From Tetramitus jugosus (Eukaryota; Protista; Heterolobosea), in NCBI GenBank assembly GCA_937625935.1, contig OW569359.1, forward strand, positions 469,597 to 533,596: DNA of 64,000 bases, written 5' to 3'. A program made the translations under genes and the position numbers. Below are positions 1,633 through 39,289 of this stretch, piece after piece. Position 1 is the first letter of the stretch; each line of letters opens with the position of its first letter. The notes under the pieces were generated by a model. That model was not told the origin of the DNA, did not search any database, and worked only from the letters and a program-made list of their open reading frames with translations.

Positions 1633-3288
1633 TTACTTGACTTGCTTCTCATCCGCTTCTCTGATCAAGTGTTCCACTGCATCCAGTGAGCCATCAATGG
1701 ATGGAAGACTTTCATCGTCCAAATCCATAATCTCTGCCAACAGTGGATACAGGTGAATGTTTTCAAAGGGTGCCACTGGCTGATCAAATTGCTGTATCCT
1801 TGGCCCGCTGGCAACAAACAGAGCGCCCATGTCGTCCACCTTGTTATCATATCCATGATCACCGTTCAATGATTGAACAAAGTAAGTGGACATCCAACAA
1901 TGATTTTCAACTGCAATGACCAAATCAGAGCACGTCTCGGGAAAGTTTTGACAGGCTTGCTTAAAGTGCAATCGATCTGGAACTTCATTTGCCTTGTAAG
2001 TCGTGTACTTGTTACCTCCTTGCACAACTTCCTCTCCTTGCTTCAACTTGTCGTACACTCGATCAACAAGGAGTTGAACATCTCCAGATCGATTGACAGC
2101 AGTCAATTGAACAAATGGGCCGTAGAATGTCTTGAATTGGTTCAAATCTGTCAGACCGACAATATCACCAATATTGACCTCACAATTCTTGTTCAATTGT
2201 GACATGCCGTGATCAGACACAATCACAATATGAACATCGGTCAATGGATTCACATCACGCTTCTTCAACTCTGAAAACAAGTAACCAACAACTTGATCAA
2301 CACTGTTGACAGCGTCTCTTGTTGCTTGACTCAGAGGACCATATGAGTGACCTTCATGATCCACACCACTAAAGTAGCTCACATACAATAGATTCAATCT
2401 CTCATCATCTTCATTGTCCTTGTTTGCTTGCACTCTTTCCTTCAATTTCTTGTCATCTTCATCAAAATACTTCATGAGCAGATCAATCTTGTTCTTATCA
2501 CCAAAATTATCATCATAAATTTCTTGATACCGAGTAGGTTTCATTCCCTGTAGCTCTACATTGGAACCAGGCCAGAAAATTGTGGAAGCAGAGTGATTTT
2601 GCTTCTCAACAGTGATCCAGATGGGTTCACCTCCTTGCCACCACTCTGTCTCTGTGCTGCTCATGGTAAATGAGCGGCGATTGACCTTATTGTACATGCC
2701 ATTGTTCAAAATGCCATGATTAGCTGGGTACTTGCCAGTCACTAACGTATAATGATTGGGAAACGTTTTTGTGGGATAGCTTGGGATCAATCTCTCAGCT
2801 CTTGCACCATTCTTGGCCAATAATTGAATATTGGTCGTTTGTTGTGCAAACTGCTGCAAGTAATCATATCGAAACCCATCAATCGACAACAAAAAGACCG
2901 TTTTCTGTAGCCATTTTTTTCGCGCGCCAGTCTTTTTTGCCGCTCTCGAACGGGTGAGCGCCCTGTACGTGATCCAAGTCGAAAAGAAGAGTATGAGCAC
3001 AATGCTCAAGCAACAGACAATCGCAACCAAGTAACCAAAAATTCTCATGTTCGTGACGGGTGACCACCACTTTGGTGACTTTTGGAATCGATAATAATTT
3101 TGACCCAAATCTGATTCTTCATCTTGGTTGTGTTCAACCACTGAAGAAGCAGCAGAAGAATTGAGTTGTTGTTGTTGGTTGACTGTTGGTAGTAAGATAT
3201 CGTTGTGTGGGTGCTCATCTAGTTGAGTCAACTGTTGTTGTTGATGAAAGAGAGCTTCATCGTCATCCTCGTGTTGCTGATAGCTCAT
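1633..3288 (-). CDS. Ectonucleotide pyrophosphatase/phosphodiesterase (ENPP family), type II membrane protein
   Basis: N-terminal TM helix; motifs 'LSIDGFR', 'PTKTFPNHYTLVTG' (catalytic Thr), 'DHEGH', 'SDHG', 'DHGYDN'. Confidence 0.95.
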   Translation of the reverse strand: MSYQQHEDDDEALFHQQQQLTQLDEHPHNDILLPTVNQQQQLNSSAASSVVEHNQDEESDLGQNYYRFQKSPKWWSPVTNMRIFGYLVAIVCCLSIVLILFFSTWITYRALTRSRAAKKTGARKKWLQKTVFLLSIDGFRYDYLQQFAQQTTNIQLLAKNGARAERLIPSYPTKTFPNHYTLVTGKYPANHGILNNGMYNKVNRRSFTMSSTETEWWQGGEPIWITVEKQNHSASTIFWPGSNVELQGMKPTRYQEIYDDNFGDKNKIDLLMKYFDEDDKKLKERVQANKDNEDDERLNLLYVSYFSGVDHEGHSYGPLSQATRDAVNSVDQVVGYLFSELKKRDVNPLTDVHIVIVSDHGMSQLNKNCEVNIGDIVGLTDLNQFKTFYGPFVQLTAVNRSGDVQLLVDRVYDKLKQGEEVVQGGNKYTTYKANEVPDRLHFKQACQNFPETCSDLVIAVENHCWMSTYFVQSLNGDHGYDNKVDDMGALFVASGPRIQQFDQPVAPFENIHLYPLLAEIMDLDDESLPSIDGSLDAVEHLIREADEKQVK

Positions 3289-35647: not shown

Positions 35648-35724
35648 GTTTGTTTTTCACACAAGGTTCGTAAGCAACATCGTGGAAGGTTAAATTCAAG
35701 TTCTTCTATTTTATTGAAAGTAGG

Positions 35725-35855
35725 AAAATGGATCAGAAACTCGGAATAGAGCTCTGATCCACCAGTGGCTTTGCCACCGTGCACTATGAGGTCTTCAAAC
35801 TGGTGTGTTATCTGAGTTGGATTGGTGCTCAAACCCTATTGGTACCTCGATCGCT
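35725..35855 (-). ncRNA. Putative structured small RNA, copy 1 (type A); 5' end approximate
   Basis: Box CCUCAUAGUGCA (35791-35780), hairpin CGGUGGC-AAA-GCCACUG (35779-35763), hairpin with UAUUCC loop (35761-35729), then UUUU; structure conserved with covariation against copies 2 and 3. Confidence 0.7.
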
Positions 35856-35898
35856 TGGAGATTAAAACGCGAAAGAAGTCTGACAAAGACCACCAGAT

Positions 35899-35909
35899 CG
35901 ATGTGGTTT
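35899..35909 (-). promoter_or_regulatory. USE/DUSE-like upstream element of ncRNA copy 1 (AAACCACATCG)
   Basis: Lies at the same distance (within 3 nt) from the hairpins as the motif in copies 2 and 3, although the intervening sequence is unrelated. Confidence 0.55.
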
Positions 35910-36125
35910 GAGGGATTTGTGAAACCACTGATGTAAAAAAAGTTCCTCTGTGAAAGTTCCTCGATCTACAAAAGCATGGAAATGAAAAAATTATCTGGAA
36001 ATGAAAAATGCGATTGCGATTTATGTTGAGCAATTTTGTCTGTTTGCAACAAGAAAAAACAACCTCCAGAAGTCACAACAAGTTAACAACAAGAACCAAC
36101 TCAATCTCACAAATACAATAATACA

Positions 36126-36377
36126 ATGGCCAGCTCAAATACCTCAAGAAGAAACATTATCAAGAAGTGCTCCCTCACCCTCAAGGAACCAAGCACCCTC
36201 TCGCCAAAGAACATTATCGCAAAGGGAACAAGAACGCGAAGAAATATCAATTACAATGAAACTGCATTGTCAAGAGCAGCTCTATCTGGTGTGATTAGCA
36301 AGAAGAAGGGAAGAATCAGCTCTAAGAATCAGCTCAAAGAACACGCTGGAAAAGAGAACTACTTCTCATTGAGTTGA
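36126..36377 (+). CDS. 83-aa basic microprotein with a CHZ-like motif and D-box/KEN-like degrons
   Basis: A-rich ATG context, downstream AATAAA; 'NIIAKGTRTRRNINYNETA'; a diverged paralogous remnant lies about 600 bp downstream. Confidence 0.65.
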   Translation: MASSNTSRRNIIKKCSLTLKEPSTLSPKNIIAKGTRTRRNINYNETALSRAALSGVISKKKGRISSKNQLKEHAGKENYFSLS

Positions 36378-36468
36378 GAACCTTTCACTTGTAAATATGT
36401 AATAAACACTAACTAGGAATCCCATCTGAGATGTTTCAAATGATGCTAACTTCTGTTGTTTGGGAAAG

Positions 36469-36602
36469 AAAATGGGATCACAACTCGGAATAGAGCGCGA
36501 TCCCACAAGCCACTTTGTGACTCTGAACTGTGAGGCAGTTACGAAGAAATAATCAGTAAATTGGTTGCTTTGGTTGTTGGAAAAGAAGATTTAGCCATTC
36601 TT
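36469..36602 (-). ncRNA. Putative structured small RNA, copy 2 (type B); 5' end approximate
   Basis: Box CCUCACAGUUCA (36535-36524), hairpin GAGUCAC-AAA-GUGGCUU (36523-36507), hairpin with UAUUCC loop (36505-36473), then UUUU; 137 nt identical to copy 3. Confidence 0.7.
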
Positions 36603-36645
36603 TTCGCTCATTTATCTTCTTGTTTTACTCTTGCAGGAAAGGTTT

Positions 36646-36656
36646 CAATGTGGGAT
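36646..36656 (-). promoter_or_regulatory. USE/DUSE-like upstream element of ncRNA copy 2 (ATCCCACATTG)
   Basis: One mismatch to the plant snRNA USE consensus RTCCCACATCG; position conserved across copies. Confidence 0.55.
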
Positions 36657-36754
36657 GAAGGTTTCTTCTTGTTCGTAAATCTAGTTCCACGGACGCACTA
36701 TTCATCTCATTTTCAACTGCATAATGTATCTCGCGATCGCAATACTGTGGCACG

Positions 36755-36937
36755 ATCAAGAAGTGCTCACTCAAAGAACCAAGCAACCTTTAGCCAAAGA
36801 ACATTGTTGAAAAGGGAACAAGAGGGAGGAGAATCATTAACTACAATGAAACTGCATTGTCAAGAGCTGCCCTCTCTGGTGTGATTAGCAAGAAGAAGGG
36901 AAGAATCAGCTCTAAGAATACTACTGCTTCTCATTGA
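36755..36937 (+). pseudogene. Degenerate copy of the 83-aa CHZ-like microprotein gene
   Basis: High nucleotide similarity to 36159-36375; no ATG, a small deletion, in-frame TAG at 36791-36793, and loss of the KEN segment. Confidence 0.85.
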
Positions 36938-37599
36938 AAATTTCATTTGTAATTATACGAGGATCCACTTTTAAGCAAAAGCCTACATTACTGAGGGTTC
37001 TCGAGTAGTCTCCTATCTCAATACTAACTCAGCCAGATGGCGCTTAACTTCTCTATTCGAAATGGGAAGAGGTGGTTCCACCATTGTATGAACGTAGACA
37101 CCCGAAAAGTGAAATTGTGCTATTTCCACGTTTTCACGGACTTCTGCTATCTGTGATCACGACCCTCCTCCATTTATTCACGCCAACGAAATGGTGACCA
37201 AGGGCTATTGCTATGTGGGCGATGGCTGATGAAAACAACAGACAATAAAGTGTGCAACCGAAATGGTTGTACTAAAAAAAATCACTGCTTCTGCAAAGGT
37301 CACTGAGGGTCCTTGCACATCTTGAGGGCGTTCACGACAACGAAGACAAAAGGTAATTAATAGTATTGTAATGCAGCTTAAGATGGATAAAACAGTAACC
37401 ACCCCTTGCGGGATTTTTCTTGAATGATGAATAAGGAAAATTGCTGTAGTGGTTGCTTACGACTCATGGCCTGAGATGCAACAAAAGAGATGGCAAGGAT
37501 GAAATTGCCCGTTTTTATTATGGTTTTGTGGAACTTGAGGGAAGCTGCATGTGGAACATTTTTGTGTGGAACTACAATCGCAAAGTGCATGAAGGCGAC

Positions 37600-37940
37600 C
37601 ACTGAAATTTGTTCTGCTCTTTGCACGGATACACTCGAGAATGGTTACAATTGAGTTACACTTGCAAAGGAATCAACCAAATTAAATTCAATCGATGGCC
37701 TTTACTCATTTGGTTGGTATTCACACTTATTATGAGTTATTGTATGAGGATTACAATGCATTTCAGTATTTGACTGGCTCCGAAAGAGTTCGGAGACTTA
37801 CACTGGATGGATGTGATCAAGAATCCATCACAGAGAAAGGATTCCTTTTCTTGAAGGGTATTCACACTTCGTTGGTATCGTAGCCGAAGACCCTGCCTTT
37901 AAAAAGAAGGTGATTGGTTATTGCAATGACAGGATAAATA
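37600..37940 (+). pseudogene. Internally deleted copy of the F-box/LRR gene
   Basis: Shares 'gaaatttgttctgc', 'caattgagttacacttgcaaaggaat' and LRR text 'GIHT', 'GCDQESITEKG' with 38375-39289; deletions and stops. Confidence 0.85.
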
Positions 37941-38105
37941 CATTATCAGTACAGTAAAAGAGAATCAGCAACAGATCCAATGGCAACTTGGTCTAAATTC
38001 GAGGTAGTTACAGAGTGCTTGGTTGTGGTACACTTAGTATCAACCTTGCTCAGAACTCAAGTGGGTCTGTTACTTAAATTATTGTTAACTTCTGTTGTTT
38101 TCAAG

Positions 38106-38239
38106 AAAATGGGATCACAACTCGGAATAGAGCGCGATCCCACAAGCCACTTTGTGACTCTGAACTGTGAGGCAGTTACGAAGAAATAATCAGTAAATTG
38201 GTTGCTTTGGTTGTTGGAAAAGAAGATTTAGCCATTCTT
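38106..38239 (-). ncRNA. Putative structured small RNA, copy 3 (type B); 5' end approximate
   Basis: 38103-38239 is identical to 36466-36602 (offset 1637) while the flanks are homologous but clearly diverged. Confidence 0.7.
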
Positions 38240-38282
38240 GCTGCCATTTTATCTTCTCAGTTTACTCTTTCACGATGACATT

Positions 38283-38293
38283 CAGTGTGGGTT
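38283..38293 (-). promoter_or_regulatory. USE/DUSE-like upstream element of ncRNA copy 3 (AACCCACACTG)
   Basis: Same offset from the hairpins as in copy 2. Confidence 0.5.
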
Positions 38294-38374: not shown

Positions 38375-39289
38375 ATGATTGAAATTTGTTCTGCATTCTG
38401 CAAAGACATATGGACGAAAATCATTGAATTTTGTGACACTAGCTCATGGTTGCAATTGAGTTACACTTGCAAAGGAATTAATCAATTCAAATTCAATCGA
38501 AATCTCATGTTCAACAAGAGGAGAACACTGAAACGAGCTTTGGAAAATGAAGAGATTGAACACTGTTTTCGATTGGGAGAAGGAACATTGTTCAATGTTC
38601 ACTTGAACAAGAATCCGCATGTAGTGGATGACCATTTTCAATTCTTGAAAGGTATCCACACATTTAAGATGAGTTACTGCTATCAAATCCAAGATCAGGC
38701 ATTTCGTTATTTGAAGGGTATTCACACACTCGATATGGATGGTTGTTCTCAAATTACAGACAATGCATTTCCTCATTTGACAGGGATTCACACACTCTGT
38801 ATGAGTTATTGTAATCGAGTCACAGACAATTCATTCTATTATTTGAATGGTATTCACACACTAGATGTGAGTTGGTGTCAGAATGTCACTGACACTGCAT
38901 TTTCTCATTTGACTGGCATTCATACACTCTGTATGAGTGATTGCACTCAAATCACAAACAATGCATTCTGTTATTTGACTGGCATTCATACCCTCAACAT
39001 GAGCGATTGTAAGCACATCACTGACACTGCATTTTCTCATTTGATTGGTATTCAATCGCTCGATATGAGTGGTTGTAATCAAGTCACAGACAATGCTTTT
39101 CCTTACTTGGTGGGAATCCACACACTTATTATGAATGGATGCAATCAAGAATCAATCACAGAGAAGGCATTATCGTATTTGAAAGATATTCACATATTCA
39201 TATGGTTTCAGAGCGGACGAGACCACGATTTCATCAACAAGGTTGTCAATTATTCAGAGTACAGTCCAGCGACTCTTCAGATTGCTTAG
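38375..39289 (+). CDS. F-box-like + leucine-rich repeat protein (about 9 tandem 22-aa LRRs)
   Basis: F-box-like 'DIWTKIIEFC...WLQLSYTCK'; repeats of the form I/VTDxAFxxLxGIHTLxMSxCxx. Confidence 0.88.
   Translation: MIEICSAFCKDIWTKIIEFCDTSSWLQLSYTCKGINQFKFNRNLMFNKRRTLKRALENEEIEHCFRLGEGTLFNVHLNKNPHVVDDHFQFLKGIHTFKMSYCYQIQDQAFRYLKGIHTLDMDGCSQITDNAFPHLTGIHTLCMSYCNRVTDNSFYYLNGIHTLDVSWCQNVTDTAFSHLTGIHTLCMSDCTQITNNAFCYLTGIHTLNMSDCKHITDTAFSHLIGIQSLDMSGCNQVTDNAFPYLVGIHTLIMNGCNQESITEKALSYLKDIHIFIWFQSGRDHDFINKVVNYSEYSPATLQIA

Follow-up and report, generated by a model that had tools for sequence, protein, structure and literature searches.

A probable family of snRNA-type RNA genes with a constant two-hairpin 3' domain and type-specific 5' modules in the heterolobosean Tetramitus jugosus

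To our knowledge, very few RNAs made in the manner of small nuclear RNAs (snRNAs) by RNA polymerase II (Pol II) are known outside the spliceosomal, U7, U3-like and spliced-leader (SL) classes. The Class I RNAs of Dictyostelium are multi-copy, with a CCCA-type upstream element and a short conserved motif joined to a variable region, and their function is unresolved (PMC7919456); SL RNA genes are linked to 5S genes in Euglena (PMC2784804). Here we describe RNA genes from a 64,000-nucleotide (nt) stretch of the Tetramitus jugosus genome (GenBank contig OW569359.1, positions 469,597 to 533,596; "the window", the right end of contig 16) that resemble both systems in part and belong to a real, apparently undescribed family that no tested class includes. 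No Pol II snRNA-type RNA of this kind was found described for Heterolobosea in the open-access literature.

Three copies lie on the minus strand, in the gap between a RIOX1/NO66-type gene and an LRR gene. Each is built of a box, a hairpin 1 of 7 base pairs (bp) with a 3-nt loop, a bulged 13-bp hairpin 2 with the loop UAUUCC, and a U tail, and the three share identical spacing, box and hairpins occupying 35791-35728, 36535-36472 and 38172-38109. This is the arrangement that the original prediction, made from the letters of the window, had given, and several of its finer points hold on re-reading the copies: five of the seven pairs of hairpin 1 differ between types A and B, three of them by double changes; exactly 137 nt are the same in copies 2 and 3 (38239-38103 versus 36602-36466); and the RNA strand is the minus strand, which folds with z-scores of -4.2 and -4.5, against -2.3 and -1.2 for the plus strand. 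Other points needed correction. The supposed 1-nt linker between the hairpins is in fact a G-U pair through which helices 1 and 2 abut, and about 20 nt of the variable 5' segment, put at 60-65 nt, is probably promoter, so that the predicted transcribed part is 38 nt in type A and 42 nt in type B. The parts of the three genes, all on the minus strand, are as follows.

35898-35907, minus: copy 1 (type A), CCACAT element like an upstream sequence element (USE), at -78; a like element stands at -77 to -85 of the genome's U1, U2, U4 and U5 genes
35862-35867, minus: copy 1, TATA-like element at -38 (U1/U2, -37 to -41; U6, -31/-33)
35792-35829, minus: copy 1, type A 5' module of 38 nt with its predicted start (AGCA), the start being placed by the spacing of the promoter and the edge of the conserved part
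35780-35791, minus: copy 1, 12-nt box
35725-35779, minus: copy 1, constant scaffold with hairpin 1 (35779-35763), hairpin 2 (35762-35728) and U tail
35703-35714, minus: copy 1, snRNA-type 3' box, A-rich and ending in AGAA, the same element as after U4, U2, U1 and U5
36645-36654, minus: copy 2 (type B), USE-like element
36616-36611, minus: copy 2, TATA-like GATAAA
36469-36578, minus: copy 2, predicted RNA of about 109 nt (module 36577-36536, box 36535-36524, hairpin 1 36523-36507, hairpin 2 36506-36472)
36450-36461, minus: copy 2, 3' box, letter for letter that after the genome's U4 gene
38282-38291, minus: copy 3 (type B), USE-like element
38253-38248, minus: copy 3, TATA-like GATAAA
38106-38215, minus: copy 3, predicted RNA identical to that of copy 2 (box 38172-38161, hairpin 1 38160-38144, hairpin 2 38143-38109)
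38089-38100, minus: copy 3, 3' box with the letters found after U4

The box of all copies (for example 36535-36524) includes a YUCAY word, and type B contains, besides, the word UACUGAU and a pyrimidine tract ahead of CAG.

The flanks of these genes resemble those of the spliceosomal snRNA genes of the same genome. In the U1, U2, U4 and U5 genes a CCACA or CCATA element stands at -77 to -85 and a TATA-like word near -40, and soon after the last hairpin comes an A-rich box with AGAA at its end; the U6 genes have their upstream element at -68/-69 and a TATA-like word at -31/-33, and one of them has a word similar to the 3' box. In 38 of the 39 typed copies of the family the upstream element lies about 77-82 nt ahead of a conserved ACA, GCA or UCA start, and the 3' box follows 43 of 43 copies as against 7% of background windows, by a pattern derived from the family copies themselves. 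The fixed promoter and the independent transcription of the original prediction are supported; the promoter is external, with upstream element and TATA-like word at constant spacing and a spacer of free sequence. Because element, TATA and 3' box are arranged as in U1/U2/U4/U5 and unlike U6, the family is with good probability made by the U1/U2-type Pol II snRNA pathway, and its products would then be capped Pol II RNAs of about 89-130 nt, probably nuclear and without an Sm ring. The terminal UUUU is probably not a Pol III terminator, since promoter spacing and 3' box match Pol II snRNA genes; moreover, T4 runs occur inside types C and F and right before the start in 15 copies, which would stop Pol III and makes that polymerase unlikely.

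The family does not fall into any of the classes tested. Copies lack a conserved AU3-6G Sm site, the box reading like CUYCACWGUYCA and the letters after AUUU varying, whereas the Sm sites of the genome's own snRNAs are canonical. A search of the copies against Rfam 15 returned only the 5S gene at gathering score and nothing credible on the copies themselves at E <= 10, in line with the earlier failure to recognize a known family. The family covariance model does not pick up the 3' domains of the U1, U2, U4 and U5 genes, and the idea that hairpin 2 is a homologue of U2 stem-loop IV was dropped, as the model did not detect it. U12 has no match in the genome. Two U1 genes (L041, L042) diverge strongly from each other and have different 5' ends, one for GUAUGU and one for GUAAGU donors, and four U2 genes (L043-L046) differ in their 3' domain and loop IV.

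The genome searched comprises 26.35 Mb in 56 contigs, with TTTGGG telomeres; the published assembly has 26.3 Mb in 55 scaffolds and a mitochondrion of 49.46 kb (PMC11106597). Contigs C54 and C56 are both 49,460 bp, so that the mitochondrial genome may have been entered two times. The family has 47 places on 24 contigs, on which BLAST and both covariance models agree. The 39 intact ones divide among seven 5' types (A 8, B 11, C 4, D 6, E 4, F 5 and G 1, leaving out two metagenomic rows), and about eight are truncated, broken or promoterless. Pattern matches in bacterial genomes and viral contigs reached no more than 21 bits and were set down to chance. Across 28 distinct genome cores, standard pairs fill 99.6% of 560 pair cells, compared with 34-44% in slid controls, and seven of the 20 pairs show double changes. 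Since the 28 core rows are related, the shuffle count is not a probability, and many of the pair changes go back to one split, that of type A from all other types, so that the independent events are fewer than the cells. With this reading, both the covarying scaffold and its recurrence at many loci with different 5' parts, as the original prediction had anticipated, are borne out.

The 5' modules are 22-63 nt long genome-wide, mostly unpaired and poor in G (9-25%). Within a type, modules are 78-99% identical and scaffolds 97-99%, while promoter spacers stand at 49-63% identity and flanks at about 40%; type A modules, for instance, are 99% identical among copies whose spacers are 63% identical. 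The claim that the 5' segments are unrelated between types holds for A, B and G, which are mutually unrelated, and fails for C, D and F, which are homologous (P <= 0.001), with E weakly so. C, D and F, and probably E, arose from one another by mutation and not by acquisition of spacers. That the 5' part is exchangeable is supported: B, C and E are each seen with two or more scaffold haplotypes (A keeps its own), and a distant homologue described below keeps the scaffold under a different 5' part. It is very probable that this is a real family of functional RNA genes, maintained by purifying selection.

One might suppose instead that only the constant part works and that the 5' variation is tolerated drift among paralogues whose types differ in no function, as in a lineage-specific RNA of the Dictyostelium Class I kind. 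The gene logic is the same (a multi-copy family with a CCCA-type element upstream and a variable region beside a constant motif; PMC7919456), and no targets have been found. Against this, copies of types A, D and F at unlinked loci remain 91-99% identical although their promoters have diverged, and the types are kept in other strains as well. Gene conversion could mimic part of this conservation, and we regard drift as an unlikely explanation.

Metagenomic data extend the family beyond the reference strain. A scan yielded three T. jugosus-like contigs with family members and one distant match, and in related strains types A and E are nearly unchanged, some copies having other flanks and the same 3' box. 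Of five runs labelled metatranscriptomic, which share few words with the window, three were examined together with one older run.

The distant match, L080 (JGI Ga0100380_10172450), is a metagenomic contig of 23% GC that aligns without gaps over the 72-nt core and folds with a z-score of -4.6. Hairpin 1 keeps its 7 bp and 3-nt loop with most letters changed, so that double changes are seen at six of its seven pairs once L080 is added; no letter differs in the GUGG base, the 12-nt apical hairpin or CCAUUU, and the box is not kept. Its 5' part is a 62-nt sense match to eukaryotic large-subunit (LSU) rRNA, at model positions 2449-2512 (Rfam, E 3.3e-6), which aligns to position 2686 of the T. jugosus LSU (P 0.002-0.005). 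The rRNA piece stands alone, there being no other rRNA on the contig, and its closing helix is whole, with both strands present; the LSU fragment is the only Rfam match on L080. We take the copied stretch to be the L1 stalk, helices 76-78, which contacts the tRNA elbow. This stalk is bound by uL1/L10a (PMC4937301). The same contig encodes, at 92-667, a divergent eIF5A whose best solved relative is PDB 7n4d. That entry is presumably a Naegleria fowleri protein, and the host of L080 is probably a heterolobosean. A contig from a relative that carries eIF5A (L128) also carries STI1/HOP, uL14 and a piggyBac-type transposase.

A second module that can be assigned is that of type G, a single gene (L029, contig C34, 42410-42550, minus strand), which agrees, in sense, with the stretch of U2 that recognises the branch site at 12 of 13 nt (P 0.0015, for a motif chosen after it had been seen). 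It lacks U2 stem I, which pairs with U6. A perfect 10-bp inverted duplication lies in the same module, immediately before the U2-like stretch. Further resemblances were tried and given up. A likeness of the scaffold to LSU position 3104 (P 0.04 among about 30 tests) is lost in type A and L080 and was put down to chance; those of types C and D to LSU 30-50 and of type B to LSU 57-90 or 2713 are suggestive by eye but lose significance when the whole unit is tested; the U2-like motif seen in L080 (P 0.01) was withdrawn, being accounted for by the rRNA match; and the listed secreted small RNAs of Naegleria (PMC11761746), chief among them a piece of rRNA, with several pieces of tRNA, show no resemblance.

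On these grounds we tentatively favour a scheme, possible without being probable, in which multigene snRNA-type small RNAs of about 89-130 nt join a mimic module to a constant handle. The members, as functional genes under purifying selection, would be transcribed by the U1/U2-type Pol II snRNA pathway, with its upstream element, TATA and 3' box. The two stacked 3' hairpins would form the handle, whose invariant apical CUC-UAUUCC-GAG hairpin and GUGG/CCAU base would bind one common protein; this part of the scheme is likely. The type-specific 5' module would act as bait, a sense mimic of an rRNA, snRNA or pre-mRNA site that captures the usual protein or tRNA of that site and carries it to the handle protein for buffering, chaperoning or turnover, new specificities arising through captured RNA fragments, mutation and recombination at the box. 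The bait role is the least certain step.

Several observations weigh against this scheme. Sense mimicry has as its basis a single short contig from a metagenome and a type with one copy; for types A-G of T. jugosus, sense matches to the organism's own rRNA (Fisher P 0.29) and to the L1 module of L080 (P 0.71) are not significant. L080 itself may be partly chimeric, because a second assembly of the same eIF5A gene diverges from it about 40 nt after the stop. The common handle-binding protein is predicted; none was identified. On the side of transcription, starts and ends are predicted positions, and T4 is enough to end the 5S gene of the genome, so that Pol III is unlikely rather than excluded for the family. 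The runs labelled as RNA contain genomic DNA, with contigs of up to 65 kb; matches continue from the RNA gene into flanking DNA and therefore show presence in other strains, not transcription.

The original prediction had seen in the 5' part the antisense targeting segment of an RNA-guided system, and this the analysis has so far not supported. Patterns of 18-19 nt from types A-D find in the genome only the family itself and near-chance matches with 2-3 mismatches, and thus no near-perfect second site. Antisense matches to 18S, 5.8S and LSU rRNA and the spacers do not exceed chance (longest Watson-Crick run 10; Fisher P 0.08), nor do those to snRNAs and 5S. In viral contigs there is nothing for type A and, for type B, a single 19-nt match in a phage contig that is the one expected by chance. 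No nuclease or partner gene occurs among the neighbours (25 of 53 Pfam families listed), and none of the 27 TnpB/Fanzor-domain matches in the genome lies within 12 kb of any family place. The only identifiable modules, moreover, are sense copies of other RNAs. Pairing between the invariant loop and loop C of 5S reaches -10.8 kcal/mol, which is not significant (P 0.053). Outside the family loci, a near-chance 17/18 match to the type C module lies on contig C4 (108902-108919, minus strand), 2.4 kb from a Fanzor-domain open reading frame (ORF). The ribosomal DNA units stand on two unplaced contigs, C53 and C55 (L058, L060, L062, L064), on both strands.

Antisense guiding in a looser form ranks second after the bait reading and is rather unlikely. 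The family would then comprise U7- or U2-like guide snRNPs in which a short seed of the 5' module, of up to about 12 nt, finds its complement in pre-mRNA, an intron or foreign RNA, the scaffold delivering a processing or modifying enzyme. The modules are mostly unpaired, G-poor, kept by type and swapped between scaffolds, as guides might be; branch points could be bound by the U2 branch-site stretch of type G; Sm/Lsm-domain matches number 18 in the genome, slightly above the usual 15; and short seeds would escape the searches made. Opposed to this are the lack of any extended complement in genome, rRNA, spacers or snRNAs, the origin of C, D, F and probably E by mutation rather than by acquisition of spacers, and the module of L080, which is self-folded rRNA in sense. 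Likewise, no canonical 3' stem-loop was found near the 16 histone-domain matches, and there is no match to U7 or to SLBP, the latter search having been made without a positive control. A wider formulation, in which snRNA-type genes capture functional RNA fragments, such as the rRNA L1 stalk and the U2 branch-site region, onto one scaffold as interchangeable baits or guides that aim one effector, is doubtful, if slightly less so. If it were true, a single effector could reach many proteins or RNAs of the ribosome or the spliceosome and might, for instance, balance ribosome components beside 5S genes.

The surroundings of the family are marked by 5S genes, of which one lies between copies 2 and 3. 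Together with the protein-coding candidate of the gap, it completes the features of this region:

36980-37099, minus: 5S rRNA gene (Rfam, 99.3 bits)
36126-36377, plus: basic ORF of 83 amino acids weakly resembling the CHZ motif (Pfam CHZ, E 0.0045, which misses the cut-off)

For 27 of 46 family places a 5S gene is no more than about 1.5 kb away; orientation and distance vary, and chance would give an estimated 4% or so even with 300 dispersed 5S genes. The 5S genes are dispersed singly over the genome (at least 47), and one U1 gene (L042) also has a 5S neighbour. tRNA genes are rare neighbours (three distinct), and the neighbouring genes differ between loci.

Linkage to 5S, a Pol II snRNA-type promoter, many copies of about 100 nt and several 5' variants on a constant 3' part are what spliced-leader RNAs would show, the 5' module being the leader exon given to mRNAs and the scaffold the SL intron. 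Heteroloboseans are, besides, relatives of Euglenozoa. Nevertheless, this identity is improbable. The types have no GU donor at a common position that resembles the 5' splice site read by the genome's U1, no Sm site between or after the hairpins, and no relict leaders elsewhere in the genome, and the folded rRNA domain of L080 would be an unlikely leader. The tight linkage does recall that of Euglena SL RNA (PMC2784804).

Family copies sit in duplication-prone islands. The 83-amino-acid ORF, co-duplicated between B/C and A copies at several loci, accompanies the RNA genes as duplicates at some ten loci in all, most of them broken by stops or frameshifts, and is probably a hitchhiker; a broken copy lies at 36755-36934. 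Between the 5S gene and copy 3, 37630-37925 is a decayed copy of the adjoining LRR gene (38375-39289). Such islands, the roughly eight of 47 places that are broken or truncated, and the 27 TnpB/Fanzor-domain loci of the genome would fit selfish or dead repeats homogenised by gene conversion: a short interspersed element, a miniature inverted-repeat transposable element, a transposon end or the ghost of a Fanzor omegaRNA. The copies, however, do not behave as transposon ends, showing no target-site duplications, inverted ends or poly(A) tails, and they have an external promoter at fixed spacing with free spacer sequence, compensatory changes and conservation in an organism of 23% GC. Fanzor guides are 3', whereas here the variable part is 5' and the 3' flank is a fixed box; with no Fanzor domain nearby, we consider a selfish origin highly improbable.

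The family outnumbers the spliceosomal snRNA genes found in the same genome, and its scaffold is conserved to an organism of very different base composition. The seven type-specific probes and the one invariant loop that it offers are usable for pull-down. If the 5' parts are captured mimics or guides, they would represent a new modular ribonucleoprotein system in a deep eukaryotic branch and would bear on the origin of SL RNAs and other snRNA-derived classes beside 5S genes.

Compared with known systems, the family shares with the Fanzor/TnpB omegaRNAs, whose Fanzors occur in the same genome, a constant scaffold and a variable end, and differs in the 5' position of the variable part, the snRNA promoter and the absence of a nearby nuclease gene or transposon end. 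It has no conserved boxes of C/D or H/ACA small nucleolar RNAs, and its longest complement to rRNA or snRNA is 10 nt, at chance level. U7 has a similar free 5' arm, short box and hairpin; the family has two hairpins and a box that is not U-rich, in a genome where neither U7, SLBP nor a canonical histone stem-loop was found. Class I RNAs (RF01414) are about 60 nt long, with a stem joining the 5' and 3' ends, an 11-nt motif at the 5' end and the element at -60, while the family has a constant 3' two-hairpin domain, the element at -78 and a 3' box; copies show no match to the Class I model, no terminal 5'-3' stem and no 5' 11-nt motif. SL RNAs of Euglenozoa and nematodes are likewise snRNA-type Pol II products, multi-copy, 5S-linked and variable 5' on a constant 3' part, and the family departs from them in having no conserved donor or Sm site and no tandem arrays. 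Mimics of rRNA bound by uL1 are known from L10a autoregulation (PMC4937301), and the L1 operon leaders of bacteria and archaea are such mimics, copying as the L080 module does the L1-stalk region; the known ones act in cis within mRNA, whereas the copy in L080 heads a free-standing small RNA gene with a constant scaffold. No such copy was recognised in the T. jugosus types. The spliceosomal U1, U2, U4 and U5 genes of the same genome share with the family the position of the upstream element and TATA, the AGAA 3' box, a 3'-terminal hairpin, dispersed genes and, in U2 and U5, the ACA start; they exist separately from it, as does U6, and the family has neither their Sm site nor an Rfam match. In number the two stand far apart, with one to four genes for each spliceosomal snRNA and about 40, in seven types, for the family described here.

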